A DNA stretch of 64,000 nucleotides. It comes from Asterias rubens (taxonomy: Eukaryota). The position numbers and the translations under genes are program-made. Under the pieces are notes generated by a model, which did no database searches, had not been told where the DNA came from, and saw nothing but the letters and a program-made list of their open reading frames with translations. Every line of letters begins with the position of its first letter. Position 1 is the stretch's first letter. Of this stretch, positions 9,475 to 39,900 are shown piece after piece. The stretch covers positions 1,984,001 through 2,048,000 of the forward strand of contig NC_047082.1 of NCBI RefSeq assembly GCF_902459465.1, written 5' to 3'.

Positions 9475-12400
9475 ATGGCTACTTTCCTGGATTGGGAGAT
9501 CCTGCTAATGCTGTGCTTCACTGTCATGCTTGTGGTCGTGGATTCAGGAGATACGTGGCGAGTGAAAACAAAAGGTGAGAACGATTATATGCAATTTATT
9601 CATTTATGTGTGTTAAGAATGGTTGTATGATCATAGAAAAATAACTAATTTTGTTCCAAAAGGTCAAATTTGAATAATTGATTATGGCCATTGCAAGTAT
9701 CCTGACACTACATTGCATAAATATTTATATTAAAATATACTTTGTAGAACATTAAGGAATTCCAGAGGTCCAAGGCTCGAATCGAGTCCTATTATCAATC
9801 AATAGTTCAGGCTTAACTAGCATGTTTCAACAACAACAACAACAACCCCAGCCCCTTCCCGGCGCTCTGCATGTATATACCAGACATTCCAGTGAGCCAT
9901 GTTATTCGCGAACATATTATTTTGATTGCTTTTTACCCGTCGTGTTGTCGACCGTAAACCAGAAAATAAATTGCCCTGTAAATCAAGGAAATTAAAGCTT
10001 TACTTTGTGGCAGGAACCATTAAAGACATTTGCGACTTACTATATTCCAGTTTGGCTAACCACCCAATCGATGCATGTACGCAACGACCTTTACTAAATC
10101 ATAAACAGCATTTTCTCAAGTGTAATAACTCCCTAATTAATATTGAGGCCTATCTTTTATTCCACAAGGAATATGGCAATAACTGATTGCCGAATCGAAC
10201 CCCTTGGGTTTTGAGATCAAATTAAAGCTGACATGGTCGGACAGTTTGTTTAATTTCAACCCACGTATCTTTTATTTGATCTTACATTAAAAACAAATAA
10301 TGACAATGTGCAGAGGTATTTTTCAAGCGTGAGTCAGAAGTGCCTCGTTATATTGAAAGATGATGTCCAGGTTGCAGCTCTGACACCATGGATATTATCA
10401 CTTCTTTAATTAGTCTAGACATCTCGTTAACCTTGTGTTCTTAAGAACTTCCAAACCACATTCTTATTTATATTACGGTGTCAGTTATTTCTACATCTTG
10501 GGGGAGGGGGTGTAAATCTTCGCCCTTATTTGGAAAAGTGACTTTCTTCGGACTGTTTACGTTCGAATGTAAACTAAATATAACTTTCTCTTCATGCATT
10601 AAAACGAAACAAGGCCCCAAATTGCACGTCTTGAGCCTAACATTAAGTGCTTAGCAATTCTGCTGAAAGTTTAGGCGGGGACCAGTGACAAAAAAATACA
10701 CATGCCATCCTACTTTAGCAGGCAAAACATTTCTGGTAAGCAAAATTACACACGGTGCTTAACCGATGTTTGTGACGCTCGGTAAACTCGGGTCCTGTTT
10801 GTTATTTTACTTCAAACTGTTCGAGAGTGTAGACAGGTGCTGATTTTTGAGTGTTTATCACTTAAGATTAGGAATGGGAATCGTGATCTGACATAAAACC
10901 GTCAGTCTAAACAGATTACAAACTACCTGCCATTTAATAACTCCAGTAATACGTTAACCTATTTGCGTGCAAACTAGACGCCAACCGTCCAACCACTAAC
11001 GGATTGCGTAGCTGTATCTCTGGAGATGTTCCATGACTAATTCAACCTGTCATGGTAGTCTGAGAGATGGGGACAAAAAACACACATACCCCTGGGGGAT
11101 CTCCACCATGTCTGTCGTCACAGGATGCGATCAGTCACTTTCTACCAAGCAAGGGAGCATATATCATGACGTCATTTTGAGCATTTTGGCCTATGGTAGT
11201 TAGGAGACCGGACTGATAATTGCAGTATTCAATTTGAATCAATCTGTGGGTGAGGAGTTTGCTTCGAGAATCGTGCAGACAAGATTATAATTTAGAATCA
11301 TTGAAAGGTGCATGAGGGCATCGTTCTCATCCATTCCAGTGGGGATTTTTTTGCACTTTCAGAAAGAGGGCGTGCTTCATGTTTTAGTTACGCTCAGCAG
11401 GCGAAGTGTTAATTGCAGCTTTGTATCTGCATCCGAAAGCTCTCAGAAAGATATTAATTAAGGATGCGATCAGTCCATTTTGATGAATAACCATGAATTG
11501 GCTACAATCATGTATACAAATACATCATTTTTATTTATTTGTACAACCAAAACAAGTACATGCATAGATGACGAAGTTCCAACTTGTGAGACACGGCGGC
11601 TGTTGAAATTGTTATGATTGACGCTAAATTTGTTTTACCAATGTCAGAATAGTGCACATATTTTTTATGAACTTGCTGTATTTGTTTTTGGAGAGAGTAA
11701 CATTTTAACATATTTTGTGTTGCATACTGTTTCAATAGACTTTAGTAGTCGGACGTCCCAAACCCAAATCACATTTATATCTTAATTCCCAAGCTGAACA
11801 CTTCTATCAACACCTTCACTTTCACATCAATCTGTCAATCATTTAGTAACACTGGATAATCTTTAAAGCCCCTGAGGTGTGAGCCGCTTTAAAAAACAGC
11901 CAGTGACACCGAAAAAGAAAAATACTATTTCCAGTGTGACATTTACCTGTAAAATCTTTCATCTTAAATTAATTTGAATCTCTCAGAGCTTGTCATCAAC
12001 GACCTGTTTGTAAGATAAGAAAATAATCTGATAATTATAAAAAGTTGGCAAGTTTTCATGGTAATTTTATTTCTGTAAATCATCCATAGCAGGTGCATGG
12101 CTCCGCGTACTTCCATATGATTTAGAAAACGGCAATGTTACTCATTTTCGAGATTAAAGGCTTCCTCCATAACGGCTAGGTGTGACAGGTGTAGGGCTCC
12201 TGCAAATACAGAAAGCCAACAGACACATTGGTCGTCTTGGTTGGGGAGATATCATAAAACTCTTAGGTACCAATAACAAACCTGTTTTTGTGACATAACC
12301 AGCTATATTGTTTACAATATATTCATTAGTAATAGCTGTTAAATTTGCTTCCTTCTAAACTTGACATACTCCTATAACACCACTTTAAAATCGGGTATGT

Positions 12401-15400
12401 GATTCGCACAACATTCAATCAGACTTGACCTGGAATTAAATGACGGGCACTGACCCACTGGTCACAAAACGCAGTTATACTATTCCCATGTAGAGAAGAC
12501 AGGCATGACACTTTATAAATATGATTAATATAATCTTAGATTCTCCTTGACCCACAGCCCGACCAAGATTACACCTCTACGGGTCCAGCACCGGTATTTT
12601 ATTTAAAAAAATTAATTTTACAAAATACTTTTCGTTTTCGAGGATGAACTCTTCCCGTGCCATGCTGCGCTACCCTACAGGAATAAATTGACCTTCAAAA
12701 ACTCATACTTTTTCTTACATCCTTTGCCAACTTTACCTCTCCCTTGTGCCCCCTCCCCATTAGCCACACTTCATGCCCTGCCTGCCTCACCCCTCACTTT
12801 GTACACCCATCTTCGATCTGTCTTAAGTTTGTCTCAGCTTTTGAGCTTTGGGAGTATGATTCAATTGCACATCAGACATGTAAAGGGGCACCATAGAGTC
12901 CACCATAGAATCCCCTGCCTGAGCTAATGTTTGCCCGCGCAGGATATCATGCTTAATGTACTTTCCTGTTTACCAAATAAAATTTATGAGTCCAAAAGGA
13001 ACCATGCCTGGCTCTAGACTGCTGTAAGATGATGGGAAATGAAATTTCGAAAATCAATCAACTTTAACCAATAATATGTATGTACCAATTGTGTAAATAT
13101 TATAATGTGTCTATATAGTGTCATAATAATCTCCAAGCTGCGACCTGTTTTATGTTTCATTGGCATATCGGATGAACCATGGATGATAGGCCATGTTTTT
13201 TCCCTTCTTGATGTAACCACACTTAAAAAAGAGAGTAGTTCCTGCAGCTATGAACCGCCCAGTTCGGGTATGATATTTTGCCCTGTGAAAAAAAGAGTGG
13301 GACAACTTCCTTGAGTACAAAACGGACCTGCGCAACTGTACATTATGGTATAGTCTTTAGGTCTAATACATTTCAGGCTATTAACAATAGTGTTTTCCTA
13401 TGATGAGTAATTTTTTTTCAGAAATCAGATTTAAGTTTTAGGAAAAATATCACACCAGTCAGTTTGACCAACCATGTTTATATGATGGAAACTTTTCTTT
13501 CAAAGTTTTATTTTGAATAATAATTCATTTCATTTTCCCTCCATACCACAGCTTGCCCACAAGGGTGCAATTCCTGCACAATGTTCAACGGATGCGTCAC
13601 TTGCAAGCCTCGCTACCTTCTCCTCCTTCATAGAAGTGGAATGAAACAAATGGGTTACTGCAGACACACGTGCCCTCCTGGCTACTACGCGAGTACGATG
13701 TCTGATGTTAACAGGTGTTCAAGTAAGTGATTGAAATGTGGATTTAGGTCTGGAGAGGGGTGTGGGGGCAAAAAGAACACCCTAGTTCTTGAACCTATTC
13801 ATTTGAGCACATCTCCCCAATGTTCTACTCTTTATTATCATTATCTTGGTAAACCGGGGTTTTTAATTGAAGTTAATTAACAACAGAAAAAAACATAAAA
13901 GAGAGTGTTAACCTTGACTTAATGATCTTTCAACTGAGTTTAAGTTTTCTTGGAAACTTTAGCTGATGACAGCTCGTTCAAATTGTAATGTATTCAAGAT
14001 TGTGTACTGCGCTGGCACGATGGCGACATACAATGATAAACAATTGATATGAACAGGATGTAGAGGGCGGTATTTAAGTCACCAGCAATTACACAGTCAC
14101 CATTCTAAGTCACTTCGCTTGTCTGGTTTGGGTTTTTAAAATAGTACAGACGATGTGTGGCCACACAAAGCCCATGCCAGATGTCACTAAAGATAGGCAT
14201 GAAAAAGATTACCAACACTCAAATTAATTTGATGGCGACACCAAATGCCGTACTACTATATATAGTTATAACAATAGAAATAGTTATTCTAAGAAAATAG
14301 TGTCCTTTTCGCTTCTCGTCGTGGTGGCACTGTATTTACTTGGAAACATGGTCTAAGAACTGAATAGTATTAAGCAATGACAATCTCCCCTACCCATCAC
14401 CAAACAAAACTAAAACACAACCCACCAAAAACAATAGAAACAAATAGACCCCAAAATACATTTACATGTTCTTTTACCATTCCTCATATTATTCAGAATG
14501 CAGAGTGGAGAACTGCGAGTCTTGTTACAGCCGAACCGTTTGTTCAAACTGTCAGTCACCGTTCTTCGGATACAACGGGAAATGTTACGCACAGTGCCCT
14601 GAGGGCACATGGGCAGACAGAAAGAGTGGGCACTGCGTCGATACAGGTACATACACACTGAGTTAATTTGAACCAGTTCAGTCGGAGATAAGTCATGTCG
14701 TTACCATGGTGACATTTAATTGCTGATTCTCTCAATTTGTATGTTAAAATTTAGCCATAGAATAGCAGAGCCTACTGGAAAGTTGGGACAGATTTAATGG
14801 GCACAAAGCAAGTCTTTATTTTGAACTTGTGCTCCTGTAGACTTTACTCCCAATGGCCTATGAGTATGAGTTTTAGTCAGATCGGGCCAGGGGTCAGACA
14901 GAAAAGGGCTGTGAACCCACAAGAGGGAGGGCAGCAAGACTAGCTCTCTTTTAAAATCTTTCTTACCATAGTCATCATTGATAAGACCGATGTTAAAAGA
15001 GAGCCAAATAAACTTGAGTATTCAGTTTGACTTAAACAGAATGGTTAATGTTGACGCTAATAAATGTCTTGCAACTTTAGGCAGACTTTGAATACTACAT
15101 TTGATAGGTAATCCGAATTATTATAAAAGATTGACGTCTCACTAAATATTATTTCATTAAGAGGTGTGGAAATGAAGTTAACCTACTCTTTTCGCAAAAT
15201 GATGTATTATCGATTTCTTTATCTGACTTATGAACATTAACTGAAAACTCATCATTCTCTTACAGTTAATTGCGTGGTGTCCGAGTGGGATAGCTGGACT
15301 CCTTGTCAGAAAAATGGCGCCCTCTGTGGGTACAAATGGGGAGAAGAATCTCGAATGAGAGGAATCATCACACCGCCCTCACCGGGAGGGGAGAGTTGTC

Positions 15401-16062
15401 CCGAGCTGTTAGAGACCAGACAGTGTCGAATGGTGCAAAGATATTGTCAAGGTAAACAATAGTTTTGAACATTCCTTGGATGACATGATGGAGAGAAACA
15501 TTAAGAAGTTTTCACTGGGGTTGAAGCCAATTAGACATCCGGGTAGTGGTATGTCGTCGGATTCCCCACATAAACCAATTACTGTTAGCAAGAGATTCAT
15601 TTCAACGTTCTTAGCTGACTATCAAAGTTAAAACTTGTTTGTCTGTTTATTGGAAAAGTATGACACTGTATGTAGCAGGTGTTTTGCCTAGTTAAATAAA
15701 CTTACTGCCTGCCTACATACACCATGGTCTGACGTGGACAAGTCTTCCCCCTAGATAAAACTGTACAATGACATGAAGGCCTTGTGAGTATAACTTTAGA
15801 TAAATGACTTTTTTAATGATTTTTTTTTTCAACAGAAGACGACCTTATCACTGAAGCAACGGCAGTAGGTCAATATAAAAACGACAAAGAAAGCTCGAAA
15901 AGAAAGTCGGCACGACGAAAATCACGAAAAAGAAGTCGAACTCGCAAAACGCGAACAAGGACTCGCTCAAAGAGTGGTCGTGAAAGAGATCCATCAAAGT
16001 CAAGAAACAACGAGAAACAATCTCGCGATACACCACGAGATCTTCCAGCGGATATTGCGTGA
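9475..16062 (+). CDS. RSPO: R-spondin (signal peptide, Fu1, Fu2, TSP1, basic tail), 277 aa, 5 coding exons
   Basis: Exons 9475-9574 (MATFLDWEILLMLCFTVMLVVVDS signal peptide), 13552-13722 (CPQGCNSCTMFNGCVTCKPRYLLLLHRSGMKQMGYC..., Fu1), 14497-14646 (CRVENCESCYSRTVCSNC..., Fu2), 15266-15451 (CVVSEWDSWTPC...CGYKWGEESR..., TSP1), 15836-16062 (Lys/Arg-rich tail, TGA). All introns are GT-AG and phase 1. The Cys pattern aligns with vertebrate RSPO2/3. Confidence 0.95.
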
Positions 16063-18371
16063 ATGTTCAGAGGATCCTTGGTGGATTGAACACGAGAGGG
16101 CGCTTTTGTCAAAGATGCAGTGTGAGGAGCTCTTCCATAATCTGTTTTGAAAGCTCTGAATGTGAAAATGAGGCACACGTCTCTATTAGCGTTGAATAAC
16201 CTTCAACTAAATTGACGAGAATGATTGTACGAAAGACTGTGCTTTTAAAAAGAAATGCCATGCTTTTAAACATTCTGTATATTATTTTGTGTCTCATCGA
16301 GCACAATTCGGGAAGCAATGTGTGTTTATGCAAATGCTACTTTATTAAAATTAATAATGAACGAGTAACACAAGAACAGAACCACGCAAGATGCCAATTC
16401 AATAGCTCCGTCATCAACAATTATGCACATTTCTCGTCAAAGTTCCACTATGAGACAATGGAATGATGTTAGGTTTGTGCCATCTTAAAGCCCATTGATT
16501 TAGTTGTTGTTTTGAATAGAATCGCTTATTTGATGAAATAGTATAAAATGTTGTTTTTATTGATGATCAGAGGAGAGGTGAATTCCTATAGTGTACAATT
16601 CCTTTAAAAGTAAAACTTGAGATTAGATTTCACTTTCATCTTGAGTATTTAACCATTATTGGATTTCTAGTTTTGAGATGTCGAACAAGATTTTGTCCGG
16701 TACGTATAAAGAAATCATCAGCAACTAAGAGTGTGTTAATTTATATGGAACATATGCAAATAACCGAGCTTAGAGATTCAACAATTGTATCTTTCGTAAA
16801 TGTTATACGTAATGTATAATCCATTTTTAAAAGAATGCGTACATATGACATCTTACCACTTTACTATGACATCATGATGACGTTTAATTTATTATTTTTG
16901 AATAACTGAGCTCAACTATTTATTACTTTGGGGTTCGTATACCATAAGAATTATTTTGTTAGTATCGGTATAATATGATTTTATTTTTAAAATAAACTTC
17001 TTTTGTGAAATAAACCTTTCCCGAGGTTGAAAAACTTGCTGTATTTGTATTACTTCATTGAGACAGTGACAAGATAATTTCTACACATCTATGAGTTATT
17101 ATTTAAGGAGGTTGATGCAGAGGACGGACACACGTCTACTGGGGGTTTTATCATTCGTCGTTAAATCACGCTTAGTCAACCAGCGTCATCACGTTTTGTT
17201 CGATGTGTGCGATTTATCTAATGAAAATTGATAATTTTATCAATAATTGTAATTGTAATTTTTAGACGGCGGTTATTCGGGTTATATATATATTTTTTAC
17301 ATAATGACATGCTTATTTAGCAAGGGGACAATTTTGGTAGTTGCTAAAGACCAGATCCTCACTTGGTGTACCCAAACGTATGCATACAATAACAAACTTC
17401 GGATTGATGATACCAAAGCCTACACCCGATGGTCCGTAAAAGGGGGGTAACCCTGTTCCAGCCCTAGGGGTAGGAGTAGGTGGCAACGGCCTCTGGAAAA
17501 AAATCACTGTAGTCCACACCTTGAAGTGGCCCTCAGGCCTTGTGTGTCTGGCGACTAGCATTACAAAAACTGTGAACATTTTGGCTCAATTATTGGTGTT
17601 ATCGAAAAAGCAAGAAAATGATGAAAGAAAAACACCCTTGTTGCATTTATGTGCTTTCAGATGCCCAAGGAAAGCTTCATGCCTGAAGTCTTTTTACGAT
17701 TCATTGGGTGAAAAACCACCCCCTCTCTAAAATGAAATTACTTTAAAGGAATGATTTTTTAACAATATTTTATAATATTAAAGGGAGTTAGTACAAACAC
17801 ATCCAGGCCTTTAGGAGATAATCATCTTCCAGATAGAGAGAAGAAAACATTATCTAAACTCCAAACGGACAACCAAAAGTGTAATTCAAAGAGTAAAAGG
17901 TTAATTGCATGCATTCACACTTATCCTTAGAACAATACATTCAATTACTTATTACAAATTTACAGGCATAGATCAGAAACAGGTGCCAACATATACCTAC
18001 CTCCTGTTGTTATTTACTCCACCCCCTGAATTTTGTTCACCAGGCGAAAACCAATTGTCAGAATATCTTTGTTCCCTTTGTAGCGGAACTCAATGGACAT
18101 ATTTCTTAGGGAAATAATGCGTAGCAATCAATTAGTAACAATTTGAGAACCAGTGAGGTTTGTAAGTGGTAGGTTTTCCCCCACAGCTATTTCATGTTTC
18201 AAAATAAAACGGACGTAAAACAACTACGATAACGGAACAAAATCGGATTGTTGCCGAGCTCAAATACAAACCCATCTGCAGAAAAATTAGCTTCCAGCTA
18301 ACTTCCCCGACGAAGTTAGAAATGTGTTATTGCCAGGGCTGAGGTTAATCGGAATGTTCGTAACAGGAAAT

Positions 18372-29500: not shown

Positions 29501-30914
29501 GTGGATTATCACTGTGAGATACGAGCGCTAGTTTGATTTTATCCATATTAGAATATGCTTAGATTAGATTGGTTTATTAGCCAACGATTAAAAACAATCA
29601 CAGGAAGTTGATGAATTAGTCTCACATCATAAAAAATTAGCTATCCTCGCAATATGAAACCAATATAAAAATAGTATTCAATCAATGTTCAAATAAAACT
29701 GCGTTGAGATTAATGAGTTATTGTTCTCTTCACAGGGTATGTTCCTTGTTGCTCTACCCTATGCTGTCCTACATGGTGGATACTGGGGCCTTCTCGCACT
29801 CGTCACAGCTGCTGCAGTCACATGCTACACTGGAAAGATTTTAGTAGAGTGCCTCTACGTCACTGATGACGTCACTGGTTTGCGTGTGCGCGTGCGGGAG
29901 TCCTACGTGGACATTGCTAAGGAAGTATGGGGAGACCGTTTCGCTGCGCAGATTGTACACACTGCGCAGTTCATTGAACTGATCATGACGTGTATATTGT
30001 ACTTGGTGCTGTGTGGAGATCTCCTTAGTAACAGCTTTCCTACAGATAAGATGGATGAAACTGCATGGACAATGCTGGCAACTTTCTTAGTGGTACCTTG
30101 CGCTTTCCTCCGGGACCTCAAAGCAGTGTCCTGTTTGAGCTTTGGTAACGCCATTGTGCACCTGGTCGTCAACGCCATCTTGATTGGATTCTGCATAAGC
30201 TGTGCTGCCAGTTGGCATTGGAGTGACGTCGCAGTCCATGTCGACATCCACTACTTCCCGGTTTCCATGGGGATCGTCATCTTCAGCTACACTTCCCACA
30301 TCTTCCTACCCAGCCTGGAGGGAAGCATGATCGAACGCAACAAGTTCAACAAGATGCTCTACTGGACCCACGGTCTAGCCGGCTTCTTCAAGGCTCTCTT
30401 TGCTTATCTCTGCTACTTGTCTTTTGGCCCAGGAACCCGCGATATAATCACAGATAACCTTCCAACTCAAGGCTTCAGGGCGATCGTCAACGTCGTCTTG
30501 GTCATCAAGGCACTTCTGTCTTACCCCTTACCCTTCTACGCCGCCGTGGAGCTCCTAGAAAGAGCCTTCTTCAGTGGTCGACCCCGCACGGTGTTTCCGT
30601 CTTGCTACGCTCTGGACGGGTACCTGAACGTCTGGGCGGTGGCTTTACGTACCCTTGTAGTCGTGTTTAGCATGCTCCTAGCTATTGTCATCCCTCATTT
30701 CAACCTGTTGATGGGTCTTATAGGCAGTTTCACCGGCACCATGCTGTCTTTCGTCTGGCCTTGCTGGTTCCATTTAAGTATTAAATGGCATGAGATTCCT
30801 TGGTACCAGAAGCTGTTCAATATTTGTGTGATTCTTTCTGGGTTTGCTGTAGGCCTAATTGGGATTATTTATTCATTTGAGGCCCTTTTAAAAACATACA
30901 GAACTGAGCTTTAA
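20559..30914 (+). CDS. SLC32A1: Vesicular inhibitory amino acid (GABA/glycine) transporter VGAT/VIAAT, 512 aa, 2 coding exons
   Basis: Exon 1 is 20559-20918 and ends WDAGWNVTNAIQ|gtaagc. Exon 2 is 29736-30914 and starts cacag|GMFLVALPYAVLHGGYWG, with AQFIELIMTCILY and LLSYPLPFYAAVELLE motifs. The 8.8-kb intron is at the same position as in vertebrate SLC32A1. Confidence 0.96.
23187..23420. repeat. Diverged ~121-bp tandem duplication in the VGAT intron
   Basis: Two copies begin aaaatgcatt(c/t)aggaaaa and share aaattatattaaaacgaaagtga and ttatcattcaatta. Confidence 0.8.
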
Positions 30915-32695: not shown

Positions 32696-33529
32696 TTAAA
32701 AATTTGACTTGATAATTTTACCGATGAGCTCAGCATCAGGGAAATCCATGGCAACAATTCCCCATCTAGTTTTTCCCTTCAAGAAATCCGACAAGTACGA
32801 GTTCACACGCTCTGCAACAGCAAGTGGCCAAGCCAGCGCACTAGTGCCACTACAATAGGTAAGGTACATAGAGCTGACTGATCCTTGCTTGGCTCTGTCA
32901 AGATTGCTCCTTACGGTATGCCATTTTGCCTCAATGTCTTCAAGAAGTAAACTCGGGATCTTCCCCCCATCTTTAACATCTAAAGACCCGTATGGAAGCC
33001 CGACTGATCCCGAACCACCATCATAGTCTCGTAGAACTACAAGTTTTCCCCGAGCTTCCTCCACCAATGGAAACTCCTCCCCTTGATAAAATAGAGTAGA
33101 TGAGAACCTATTGAGACAAAGTTGGACAGCTTCAGCAAAGGTCGTAGTGTTGCTCTCTGGTTTACACTCTTCATCAATGCGCATAAAGACGATCTCTGTG
33201 TCGTGTGCGTCTAAGAACTTCTCCGTCACCTCAAGAACATTGTCCAAGTTTGCAAGCTGGTAGATAACATCATGATGGATCAGTAGGCCATCGTTGAAAT
33301 GTCGGCATCGTATATCGACAAATCGAATTCCTGTTTCATATTGCTTGGATAAAGGCAGTGTTTGACACTGATGCGATGGGCCACCATATTGGCTCATCGT
33401 GCAGTGGGTTCCTGGTATGGATAAAGTACACACTGAGTGTGAATCAGGCAACTGTTTCATCCAACTTGTGTATGGTGTCATGACTGTCGTGTCTTTATGC
33501 AGTGAACAAAATATCCCATAACAAACCAT
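32696..33529 (-). CDS. Bacterial-type phosphatidylinositol-specific phospholipase C (PI-PLC X domain, Bacillus-like family), intronless CDS
   Basis: 277-aa ORF with WMxxLPD...LSIPGTH, GIRFVDIRCR, IHH, ARGKLVVL and WGIVAMDF motifs collinear with B. cereus PI-PLC. The true start may be the ATG at 33481 (MTPYTSWM). Confidence 0.9.
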   Translation of the reverse strand: MVCYGIFCSLHKDTTVMTPYTSWMKQLPDSHSVCTLSIPGTHCTMSQYGGPSHQCQTLPLSKQYETGIRFVDIRCRHFNDGLLIHHDVIYQLANLDNVLEVTEKFLDAHDTEIVFMRIDEECKPESNTTTFAEAVQLCLNRFSSTLFYQGEEFPLVEEARGKLVVLRDYDGGSGSVGLPYGSLDVKDGGKIPSLLLEDIEAKWHTVRSNLDRAKQGSVSSMYLTYCSGTSALAWPLAVAERVNSYLSDFLKGKTRWGIVAMDFPDAELIGKIIKSNF

Positions 33530-34276
33530 GAATATACACTTGGACTGGTAAACATGTTAGGGAAAGGTACTCCATAATTGTTTTTATTATGTCGATGTAC
33601 ATTGTACTTTGTACAACAAACCTTTATATGTTTTGGGTCAGTACACCCGTCACAATCTAATCCTATGGTGCACGATTGTGTCGCCATAACCGACCTCGTT
33701 GTTTGTGTAAGTTCTCGCGAGACTGCTCTCGACTAAGGTCCCATTTAACCGAATCTGCGAACATAGTCGTGACAGCAGTACCCCGGCAAGGAGCAGTCCT
33801 TTGCGAGATAGTTGCAAGAGAGCCGTTTTACTATGGTGCAACATATTTTAACGACTTGTTCACAAGTCTAGAGTTGATCTAACCAAACTTGAACTTAACA
33901 AAACACACAACAAAATGTTTTGCTCAATTATTATTCGAACCAATGGAGGCAAACTTAGCCTACGGTAAATGGTATTTCTTTATTGCGCATATTGCTATAG
34001 AAGACACAATCTGAAAAACGTCTCTGCCAGTAACGCTTTTCAAGTTCAAATATTTATTCGTTTTCCATAGTACATTACTTCAGAGTGAACTGGTTCTCAA
34101 AATGCTTTATAGAACGGAAAGCTGCGGTACTTCAACTGTTTTATTGTCATTAATTTTAAGAGTGATTACCAGACGTATAGTCTACCCTTATATTTAATAA
34201 TCTGGTCTCAAACTAATTGACAAATTGACACTTATTTTTAATGACAATGTAAAACAAGGTTGACATTATTTCGAAC

Positions 34277-36902: not shown

Positions 36903-39900
36903 ATGTCGTTATGGGGATGGCATGTTCTGATCATACTCGCAGCTTGTGGCCAGTTCTTCATTGCATGTTCACCGTATAGTTATAATGTCTTCTTTACCGA
37001 GCTACAATTGGAGTTTGAACAAACTGCTCTCATTATCAGTAAGTATGCAGCGTAATTGAATCTATATTGAGAAGTGTCAGTGTCGAGAAAACCATTCAAA
37101 TAGTTTGAATAGTTTATTTAATTTATATAAACACTAACGATTTCACTTGAGGCCAGTCGCATTTCTAGCTGGAATTTGTCAACACACTGTGGTCCGGCAT
37201 TGGAGTTTAAGAATTCAATTCTTATTATTAAAACTTCGAAAAAGCCTTCCAGTGCTAGAAACAATTCAGTCTCAGATAGTGCTGGTTTTATTTAAACGCG
37301 CTGAAATGGAAGGGTATGTGGTAGGGGGGGGGGGGGGGGGGGGGTTACAATCACTCGTACCAACCGCGTCCTAATTTTGCACAAATGCAAATCTTTTACA
37401 ATTGATGAGTTTTATAGAAAAGTGACCAATTGTATTATTTCAAGAGTTGTTGTTATTAATAATTTAAAAAGAAGATTTAAGTTTATAAAAACAATGTCTT
37501 CGTTTGACGTTTTCCCCCGTATTTGGTATTTATTGTTACACGCAAAACAGATGTGTTGCGTTTTTAAACTAATTATATTTCTTCCAGGTTGGGTAGGCGC
37601 CTTGGGCTCAGGTCTAGTGTGTTTAGCAAGTCCACTGACTGCAATAATCGGAAGTAAGATCGGCAGTTATCGATTGCTGCTTCTTGGTATCGTGCTCCAC
37701 TCAGCAGGGTACTTGGCTCTTTCATTCTCACCCACCATAGCGTATTGCTTTGTGACGTTCAGTATTACTGGAATTGGTTCCTGCTGTCTGTTTTCTGCGA
37801 GTGGAAACTTCATGCTGGAATGGTTCTCGGGACGGAAGAACGTCTGTGCAGTAACTTCAGCCGGCACTACTGGATCTTCTATAGGTAACCCCCCCCCCCT
37901 AGAAAAAAAAGAAAGAAAAATACAAGNNNNNNNNNNNNNNNNNNNNNNNNNNNNNNNNNNNNNNNNNNNNNNNNNNNNNNNNNNNNNNNNNNNNNNNNNN
38001 NNNNNNNNNNNNNNNNNNNNNNNNNNNNNNNNNNNNNNNNNNNNNNNNNNNNNNNNNNNNNNNNNNNNNNNNNNNNNNNNNNNNNNNNNNNNNNNNNNNN
38101 NNNNNNNNNNNNNNNNNNNNNNNNNNNNNNNNNNAAAAATGTAAAAGAAAATTGTGAACGAAGAATGTAGTTCAGCCTTTGTGCTGCGAGGACATTACTT
38201 TTATCTATCTATCTATCAAACTCACATTGAAACGTGTACGCTTGGTACGGTGATCGCATACAAAATAAAGGCCGGTTTATAGTCGGTCGTGGGATGGTCG
38301 CGCGACGGAACTCTTGCGCGCAATCCTGAGACTGAGGCCTAAAAACCGTGTCTTTATGATCGCGCGACCAGCTTTCCGACGCCCGACCATTGCGCGACCG
38401 ACTACAACTCGGCCTTAAGGGGTTTTGGTACGGTCTGCTGCCCTCTCATGTAACTCACAACTATAGATAAGCTACTCTAAGAATGGGTCCCTGTCTCGAG
38501 CCTCGAAGTGTGACGTCAGATGTTCAGGCTTTAGGCCTAAGTTAAAACATATTGACAGTTATACTTTGATTATATCCTTTCAGGTGTAATGATCCAAGGA
38601 CCTGTTCTCACTATACTAAGTGCTGCACATGGCTGGAGAAATTGTTGCAGAATCTTAAGTGGTTTTGGCTTAGTTTTCAGTTTCTTTGTCGGATTGCCGT
38701 TTTTATCCTCCCCGAAGCATAAACAACTCAAACTATCTACGGATAAGAAAACTCCATCTGATGATCAAGAAAGAAGCTCCAAAGAAGAAAAGGTTGCGAT
38801 GGCAGACAGAGACATCGAAGAGGATGGAGATTGTAAGACATTCAAAGATAATGAAAATGACGTTGCGGAATTTAAGGAGATAGGAACTAGTACTGCGAAC
38901 AACGGGAACGTGTTGCTGAATGTGGAAGTCTGGCTGTGGGTCACATCCATCACACTCTCCCAATTTGGGTGGAGCTTTATGATTATAAACTATGTACGTA
39001 TAAGACATTCAACAACATAATGGCCTCAAGCTTTGATAAGATGTTTCGCTTACATTCTTCTTAATTTTATAATACCACTGGTACCTGGTACGACTTCACG
39101 CTGCCATCAAACCAGTTCAAAAACTTAGTATCTCAATTTGTTGTCAAATCAATACATTTGAAAATGTATTTATTGTAGGCTTTTTAGGTGAACATGAATT
39201 TTTTTTTAAAACACTCACCCTGTCCCCAAAACAAAAATGAAATCTGGAAAGTATACGTCTTTGGTCACGTGTATTGAGATATATTGGAACACCGTTCATG
39301 GCCTGTGGAACGTTCTAAATATACGAGAAAGTGTTACACTTACACGTTTGGCATTTTGATTAACAAACCAAAGTCCATACTCTACTGAACCCCTAAAAGT
39401 GTCCCTAACGTCCCAATTTATGAGACGCTATCTAAAGTAGACAGTTTCAAGTAATATCTCTTCACTGTTTTATTTACCACCAGTCAAGTTTCGTGGATAC
39501 CATGGGTCTTGATACTGATAAGAAATCAGTGGCTCTCCTTATCATGGGTGCAGCAGAAGTTGGTGGGAAGGTCCTCTATGCGGTGTTTGGAGATCACCTG
39601 CCATTTTTTAAATTGTACGCCATTGCGCTATCTTCAGCCATTGCTGCCATTGTTTCTGTATTCTTAACGATATCTTCTTCGTTTGGACATTTGCTTGCCT
39701 TGTCACTGGGTAAGTGTGTATGTAATATAAATTACTTGAACGATTGGTGGCAGCAGATTAACCAGGTAAAATCCAATAGTGTTCTGTGTGAAGTGCGCAT
39801 GCTCAGAGCTACATAAACGATGTATATTTACCTGCTAAGTCTGTTGCCACCTAGTGTTCCAAATTCTCCCATTCAATATTTATAATATTGTTCCGATATT

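Follow-up and report, generated by a model that had tools for sequence, protein, structure and literature searches.

The stretch of DNA analyzed here (hereafter the window: 64,000 nucleotides of the starfish Asterias rubens, contig NC_047082.1, positions 1,984,001 to 2,048,000 of the forward strand, with a GC content of 34–44%) carries the gene for an R-spondin in which the canonical LGR-docking set – the F106/F110 clamp plus R87, in RSPO1 numbering – is absent, its positions being occupied by Tyr, Val and Thr, and in which the face that binds ZNRF3/RNF43 is preserved. Judged by its relatives, the clamp/R87 state is derived within the echinoderms, not ancestral. As a gene it is unremarkable and has been annotated before, and echinoderm R-spondins have been catalogued (PMC12111769). 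New here is a naturally clamp-altered R-spondin without R87, together with an interface that, as far as residues tell, has relaxed on both sides in echinoderms and has been retained in hemichordates.

Residue equivalence was established by phmmer alignment to the PDB chains of RSPO1 and RSPO2 (E = 5e-15 for Fu1, the first furin-like repeat, and 1e-10 for Fu2, the second). A sequence-only reading of the window had reported HRSGMKQMG in Fu1 and CESCYSRTVCSNC in Fu2: translations of 13554-13727 and 14499-14651 confirm both, with the codons where that reading placed them (R 13632, M 13641, Q 13647, Y 14526, V 14538). On the forward strand, the equivalents of R66 (13632-13634) and Q71 (13647-13649) are unchanged, and the finger position (I69 of RSPO1/M68; 13641-13643) is Met. 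Thr replaces R87 (13695-13697), Tyr replaces F106 (TAC, 14526-14528) and Val replaces F110 (GTT, 14538-14540). Because the alignment is ungapped within an invariant Cys framework, no alternative register exists that would place an aromatic residue from elsewhere at the clamp.

The lists of LGR and ZNRF3 contacts used throughout were drawn from one review and later open papers. F106 and F110 clamp Ala190 of LGR5, and single changes of either Phe to Glu or Ala abolish binding; a second LGR site, a charged one, is made up of K59 and R87 (PMC3937510, PMC4533229). Between LGR4 and RSPO2, R86 bridges D137, D161 and D162, while F105 and F109 stack on H157, W159, A181, V204, V205 and H207 (PMC12462478). 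The LGR face of the A. rubens protein proves to be altered further than the degenerate clamp described earlier: in addition to R87T there is Thr at N109. K59 is Arg, and Asn stands at R/K113, a position that is basic in 19 of the 21 other sequences of a 22-sequence alignment. The contacts with ZNRF3 involve S48, N51, R66, R70, Q71 and the finger at position 69, occupied by Met in RSPO2/3 (PMC3861454). On this face N51, L64, R66, Q71 and G73 are unchanged, with Met for I69, Lys for R70 and Thr for S48; the claim that it is preserved therefore holds.

The polarity of these changes can be read from relatives. Fu2 could be read in 44 cluster representatives, and in these the clamp pair is FF in 38, FY in three, and YF, HY and YV in one each. 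The YV pair is that of A. rubens and supplies the sole non-aromatic clamp residue in the set; among about 50 R-spondins surveyed Val110 is restricted to Asterias. In the 22-sequence alignment position 110 is Phe or Tyr in all 21 other sequences, R87 is Arg in 19 and the finger position is Met in 19. An F/F clamp with Arg at position 87 is found in the valvatid stars Patiria and Acanthaster, in the hemichordates Ptychodera, Saccoglossus and Glandiceps, and in the oyster Crassostrea virginica. Arg is also present in a cephalopod and the annelid Owenia (both with F/Y) and in a nemertean (H/Y). The crinoid Antedon has His at this position and an F/Y clamp, and Strongylocentrotus purpuratus has Ser and the clamp loop YSRTF (Y/F). 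UniParc entry P0002, possibly from amphioxus, has Y/F. Since F/F and R87 occur together in valvatids, hemichordates and oyster, and since every other invertebrate R-spondin sampled has Phe, Tyr or His at both clamp positions, the Asterias state is the derived one. The aromatic clamp and R87 are thus older than the protostome-deuterostome split. R87 has been lost several times inside the echinoderms, Thr87 of Asterias being one of three such losses, and Tyr106 is common to Asterias and the sea urchin; Val110 arose on the Asterias line. In a maximum-likelihood tree, Asterias is sister to Patiria plus Acanthaster (support 96/96) within a group of echinoderms and hemichordates, on a somewhat longer branch (0.30 versus 0.20–0.24 for the valvatid stars).

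A word-indexed protein search with the annotated A. rubens protein (P0001), which returned five relatives only, found no protein from another forcipulatid sea star. A related organism retains the Fu2 TAC and GTT codons in its DNA and RNA contigs, and in a contig of a 5%-divergent relative (from another run) all five differences in the Fu2 exon are synonymous, including GTT to GTA at the Val codon. The Asterias states are thus fixed in its close relatives. Compared with the valvatids, Asterias differs at 5 of 10 LGR-contact sites and, among the other sites, at 14 of 86 (P = 0.024, Fisher test); at ZNRF3-contact sites the figure is 2 of 12, with no enrichment. As a separate observation, one public run (X3) compared with window positions 13452-16162 contains both contigs that are at least 99% identical and contigs that are 90–95% identical, and therefore combines a pair of related genomes, or comes from a hybrid or from pooled material.

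Exons 2 and 3, which encode Fu1 and Fu2, are part of an intact, spliced and transcribed five-exon gene: this follows from contigs spliced at GT..AG junctions and from an upstream overhang that matches exon 1. All exons lie on the forward strand. Exon 1 (9475..9574) holds the start codon, the signal peptide and a short N-terminal stretch, and ends in phase 1. It was found by scanning for an ATG followed by a hydrophobic stretch and a phase-1 donor, which left one start site, where two ATGs are in frame and two donors are possible; the choice of 9475-9574 agrees with P0001, the exon 1 peptide being its residues 1–33, and the loose upstream ends (before 13550) of RNA contigs X17 and X19 match the last bases of this exon. 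Exon 2 (13552..13722) encodes Fu1 with its ZNRF3/RNF43-binding hairpins, exon 3 (14497..14646) encodes Fu2 with the clamp loop YSRTV, and exon 4 (15266..15451) encodes a spondin-type TSP1 domain with a WxxW motif. Exon 5 (15836..16062), which is preceded by a polypyrimidine/AG acceptor, encodes an acidic linker and then a strongly basic tail, followed by the stop codon; RNA contigs extend the 3' untranslated region past 16162. Borders were taken from spliced contigs of two RNA-type runs, of which one contig matches the window exactly and another diverges from it by about 1–2%; the joints 13722>14497, 14646>15266 and 15451>15836 are all GT..AG, so that 14646, the end of the segment in the sequence-only reading, is a genuine exon end. 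Frame 3 is open through the two cysteine-rich segments (13552-13727 and 14497-14651). With the Fu1 exon as query against 1.8 billion cluster representatives, a 277-residue protein was retrieved at 100% identity. The five-exon join gives this same protein, P0001, named 'R-spondin-2-like [Asterias rubens]' by NCBI. A Pfam scan of the whole A. rubens assembly found no second R-spondin locus.

The protein has what defines the family: two Fu repeats with the R-spondin Cys framework, a TSP1 domain after Fu2, a signal peptide and a basic C-terminal region. Both repeats match PF15913 (Furin-like_2; Fu1 65.2 bits, Fu2 42.5 bits, cut-off 28), and exon 4 matches PF19028 (TSP1_spondin; 47.6 bits, cut-off 41), as does the open reading frame (ORF) piece 15241-15459. 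Residues 3–23 form the N-terminal hydrophobic helix; the tail has 25 Lys or Arg in 76 residues, 18 of them in the densest 30. An AlphaFold model built with 22 homologues as input has a predicted local distance difference test score above 90 over residues 35–205, TSP1 included, and sets the YSRTV loop (residues 101–105) between Fu2 strands 97–100 and 106–109. The modeled Fu1-Fu2 superposes on solved RSPO1/2 with TM-scores of 0.85–0.94 and root-mean-square deviations of 1.1–2 Å, and the 34 matches with E ≤ 0.001, which are the top 34, are every one RSPO1/2.

The search of the genome for partners that had been proposed earlier yielded one ZNRF3/RNF43 orthologue and one type-B LGR. PF18212 (ZNRF3 ectodomain) matches three consecutive exons on contig C5, placing the orthologue at C5:18898485-18927841. 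In comparison with solved ZNRF3, M101, H102, L104, G105, V195, N196 and A201 are unchanged, and Y116 is Phe, K125 Gln and E127 Val; the exon carrying I98 and Q100 was not located in A. rubens. Most of the platform that matches R-spondin is retained.

A single type-B LGR has been listed for A. rubens under the label 'BursiconR' (PMC11863921 supplement). A 60-residue peptide of this entry maps the gene to contig C23, and the seven-transmembrane (7TM) exon retrieves the full LGR protein, P0155, together with orthologues in other echinoderms, a hemichordate and insects; no second type-B LGR was found in a genome search using the hemichordate receptor. An arrangement with R-spondin and LGR 0.8 Mb apart on one chromosome was considered and rejected: LGR peptides are absent from C22:1156001-1240000, the gene being on C23. 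Contig numbers are not always chromosome numbers (C1 is chromosome 1, and the LGR reported on chromosome 22 lies on C23), but coordinates within contigs agree. As annotated, P0155 has no signal peptide at its start. An ORF piece at C23 1156779-1157069, immediately upstream of the second coding segment, opens with a hydrophobic, signal-like peptide and a Cys-rich, LRRNT-like stretch and continues in frame into the P0155 sequence, and this may be the true first exon of the gene. The last intron (C23:1226863-1234257) holds a long minisatellite-like array with several open frames of 200–255 codons built of a repeated unit of about 14 residues.

The best PDB matches of the P0155 ectodomain are LGR4/5, but at the 13 LGR4 contact positions it is identical only at Q113, H157 and N226. 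The changes are D137N, W159Y, D161E, D162G, A181V, V204I, V205E, H207S, E228K and T229G. In the type-B LGRs of two other stars, a brittle star and an urchin, W159, A181, V204/V205 and H207 are likewise missing, but D137 is kept in all of them, and Asn at this position is unique to Asterias among six ambulacrarian receptors. The receptor of Ptychodera aligns with LGR4 without gaps (221 bits) and retains D137, H157, W159, A181 and V205, a retention that partly reflects its higher overall similarity to LGR4. Echinoderm receptors further appear about two leucine-rich repeats (LRRs) shorter than LGR4 (P0155 residues ~240–300), as does insect rickets, which suggests that LRRs were shortened independently next to the R-spondin docking region. 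Those two LRRs are present in the Ptychodera receptor and, by eye, in that of the oyster.

Outside vertebrates the usual ligand of type-B LGRs is bursicon. A. rubens expresses both bursicon alpha and beta (PMC4772807), and its LGR therefore has a plausible ligand independent of R-spondin. The 7TM region of P0155 is 56–62% identical to arthropod (mostly insect) rickets-type receptors, and its best 120 hits include no protein that bears the name of a vertebrate LGR4/5/6: this similarity fits a conserved role as a G-protein-coupled bursicon receptor.

How, then, might such an R-spondin act? We give an even chance to its being a ZNRF3/RNF43 antagonist that is recruited mainly via its TSP1 domain and basic tail, with weak or no canonical docking on LGR. 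The protein would still potentiate Wnt signaling by capturing ZNRF3/RNF43; its recruitment to the cell surface would depend mainly on heparan-sulfate proteoglycans (HSPGs), bound through TSP1 and tail as human RSPO2/3 can do; docking on the type-B LGR would be weakened or lost; and in Asterias a relaxation of the interface across the echinoderms would have reached its end point. In LGR4/5/6-null cells, human RSPO2/3 potentiate Wnt as long as ZNRF3/RNF43 is bound by Fu1 and heparan sulfate by the TSP1/basic region, and clamp mutants are unaffected in this setting (PMC5800842, PMC7239654). The sequence parts of this mode – a Met-finger Fu1 plus a TSP1/basic region – are all present, and it is their presence, together with the concentration of substitutions on LGR-contact sites, that favors a proteoglycan-recruited antagonist. 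A bolder version, which we regard as doubtful, is that echinoderms as a group uncoupled R-spondin from a type-B LGR that serves bursicon only, leaving in Asterias a natural LGR-blind Wnt potentiator that works through ZNRF3 and HSPGs alone. The drift on both sides of the interface bears on it: sea stars, brittle star and urchin no longer have the LGR hydrophobic patch, R87 is lost in crinoid, urchin and Asterias, and Asterias has gone furthest with the loss of an aromatic clamp residue, while hemichordates retain both sides. If this were true, the R-spondin/LGR/ZNRF3 module would be at least as old as the deuterostomes.

Several points weigh against recruitment mainly by proteoglycans. Replacing Phe with Tyr is a conservative change and Val remains hydrophobic, whereas the loss of binding in mammals concerns Ala or Glu substitutions; the LGR residue pinched by the clamp is Val, not Ala, in Asterias and could offset a smaller clamp. 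Valvatids keep F/F and R87 although their type-B LGR lacks the vertebrate hydrophobic patch, so that LGR-side sequence predicts binding poorly. The Fu2 exon is under purifying selection, Y and V codons included: with all its changes synonymous the loop is still doing something and cannot be written off. Finally, the test for enrichment at LGR-contact sites is based on just 10 sites.

The same observations can be read as the trace of a co-evolved interface, in which the Asterias R-spondin still docks on the type-B LGR, its Y/V clamp and Thr87 matched by V181, Y159 and N137 of the receptor and its function unchanged. A larger pinched residue does face the smaller clamp, D137 – a salt-bridge partner of R87 – is Asn in the very species that also lost R87, and the synonymous changes in the Fu2 exon are as this account would have them. 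We nevertheless think it the less probable course. The urchin lacks R87 yet keeps D137, for which reason a strict rule of co-variation between these two residues was dropped, and in the valvatids an F/F clamp goes with Ile or Phe in place of A181; from these states no consistent pairing rule emerges. Moreover, most of the hydrophobic patch is absent from all echinoderm type-B LGRs, and the matched changes come from a single lineage (n = 1). Less probable again is a new or different partner, with the altered Fu2 loop and the third hairpin of Fu1 binding something other than LGR, or with the main role residing in the TSP1 domain. Selection that admits only synonymous changes in Fu2 despite the loss of canonical residues would make sense under this alternative, as would the change at R/K113, and RSPO2/3 are reported to antagonize BMP receptors in Xenopus (PMC7642414); but the analysis yielded no candidate for such a partner, and the conservation of both the ZNRF3 face and ZNRF3 itself points to an ordinary Wnt role.

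The sequence-only reading had gone another way and proposed an ancestral LGR-independent, HSPG-dependent mode, with the Phe clamp perfected only in vertebrates. A Met finger is indeed common among invertebrates, the basic tail is present, and a 2014 review held the R-spondin/LGR module to be vertebrate-specific (PMC3937510). The residues, the TSP1 domain and the tail do fit an LGR-poor, HSPG-assisted mode, and this part of the proposal is supported. Its polarity does not: alignment with echinoderm, hemichordate and vertebrate proteins makes the Asterias state derived, F/F with R87 being found in two valvatids, three hemichordates and an oyster and F/Y in a cephalopod and an annelid, with V110 unique to Asterias and the docking residues retained in the hemichordate LGR. 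A clamp sharpened later in vertebrates is contradicted by the same distribution, and we consider the ancestral mode very improbable.

Other features of the window are an uninterrupted ORF of 405 codons at 29697-30911 (forward strand) that encodes a complete Aa_trans amino-acid transporter domain (E = 5e-83), an ORF of 286 codons with a PI-PLC X domain at 32699-33556 (reverse strand), and a run of 208 Ns at ~37900-38110 that breaks an ORF resembling a multi-pass membrane transporter.

R-spondins are put to use, and engineered, as growth factors for stem cells, and which contact is essential – ZNRF3/RNF43, LGR or HSPG – is still debated. With its ligase face and basic tail intact, one clamp residue not aromatic and R87 missing, the Asterias protein offers a ready-made natural comparison, under purifying selection, beside sister-order orthologues that carry the canonical residues. 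F106 and F110 have been described as nearly universally conserved, with no mention of the Asterias exception (PMC12111769); this is corrected here, as they are not universally conserved. The presence of docking residues on both partners in hemichordates argues against the module being a vertebrate invention (PMC3937510).

Among known systems the closest are vertebrate RSPO2 and RSPO3, which share with the starfish protein two Fu repeats, TSP1, a basic tail, the Met finger and the equivalents of R66 and Q71, at 40–48% identity and with an ungapped Cys framework over Fu1-Fu2. Unlike the starfish protein with its Y/V and Thr, they bind LGRs tightly and have retained R86/R87 and the F/F clamp. Engineered LGR-binding-deficient R-spondins (F106E/F110E and F106A/F110A) are substituted at these two clamp positions too, and RSPO3 clamp mutants go on signaling in LGR-null cells provided their binding to HSPG and ZNRF3/RNF43 is intact (PMC5800842, PMC7239654). 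By comparison the starfish changes are natural, would be milder (an aromatic Tyr and a hydrophobic Val) and are accompanied by R87T. Closer in descent, the orthologues of Patiria miniata and Acanthaster planci are 65–67% identical to that of Asterias and have the same finger (RSGMKQ), but they keep R87 and the F..NF clamp and have two TSP1 domains rather than one. This tandem pair is found in the valvatid proteins (345 amino acids in Patiria, 342 in Acanthaster), while Asterias, crinoid, urchin and hemichordates have a single domain; the second TSP1 is probably a valvatid-specific exon duplication. The clamp loop of S. purpuratus differs from that of Asterias in its last residue alone (YSRTF versus YSRTV): like Asterias the urchin is without R87, but it keeps an aromatic second clamp residue.

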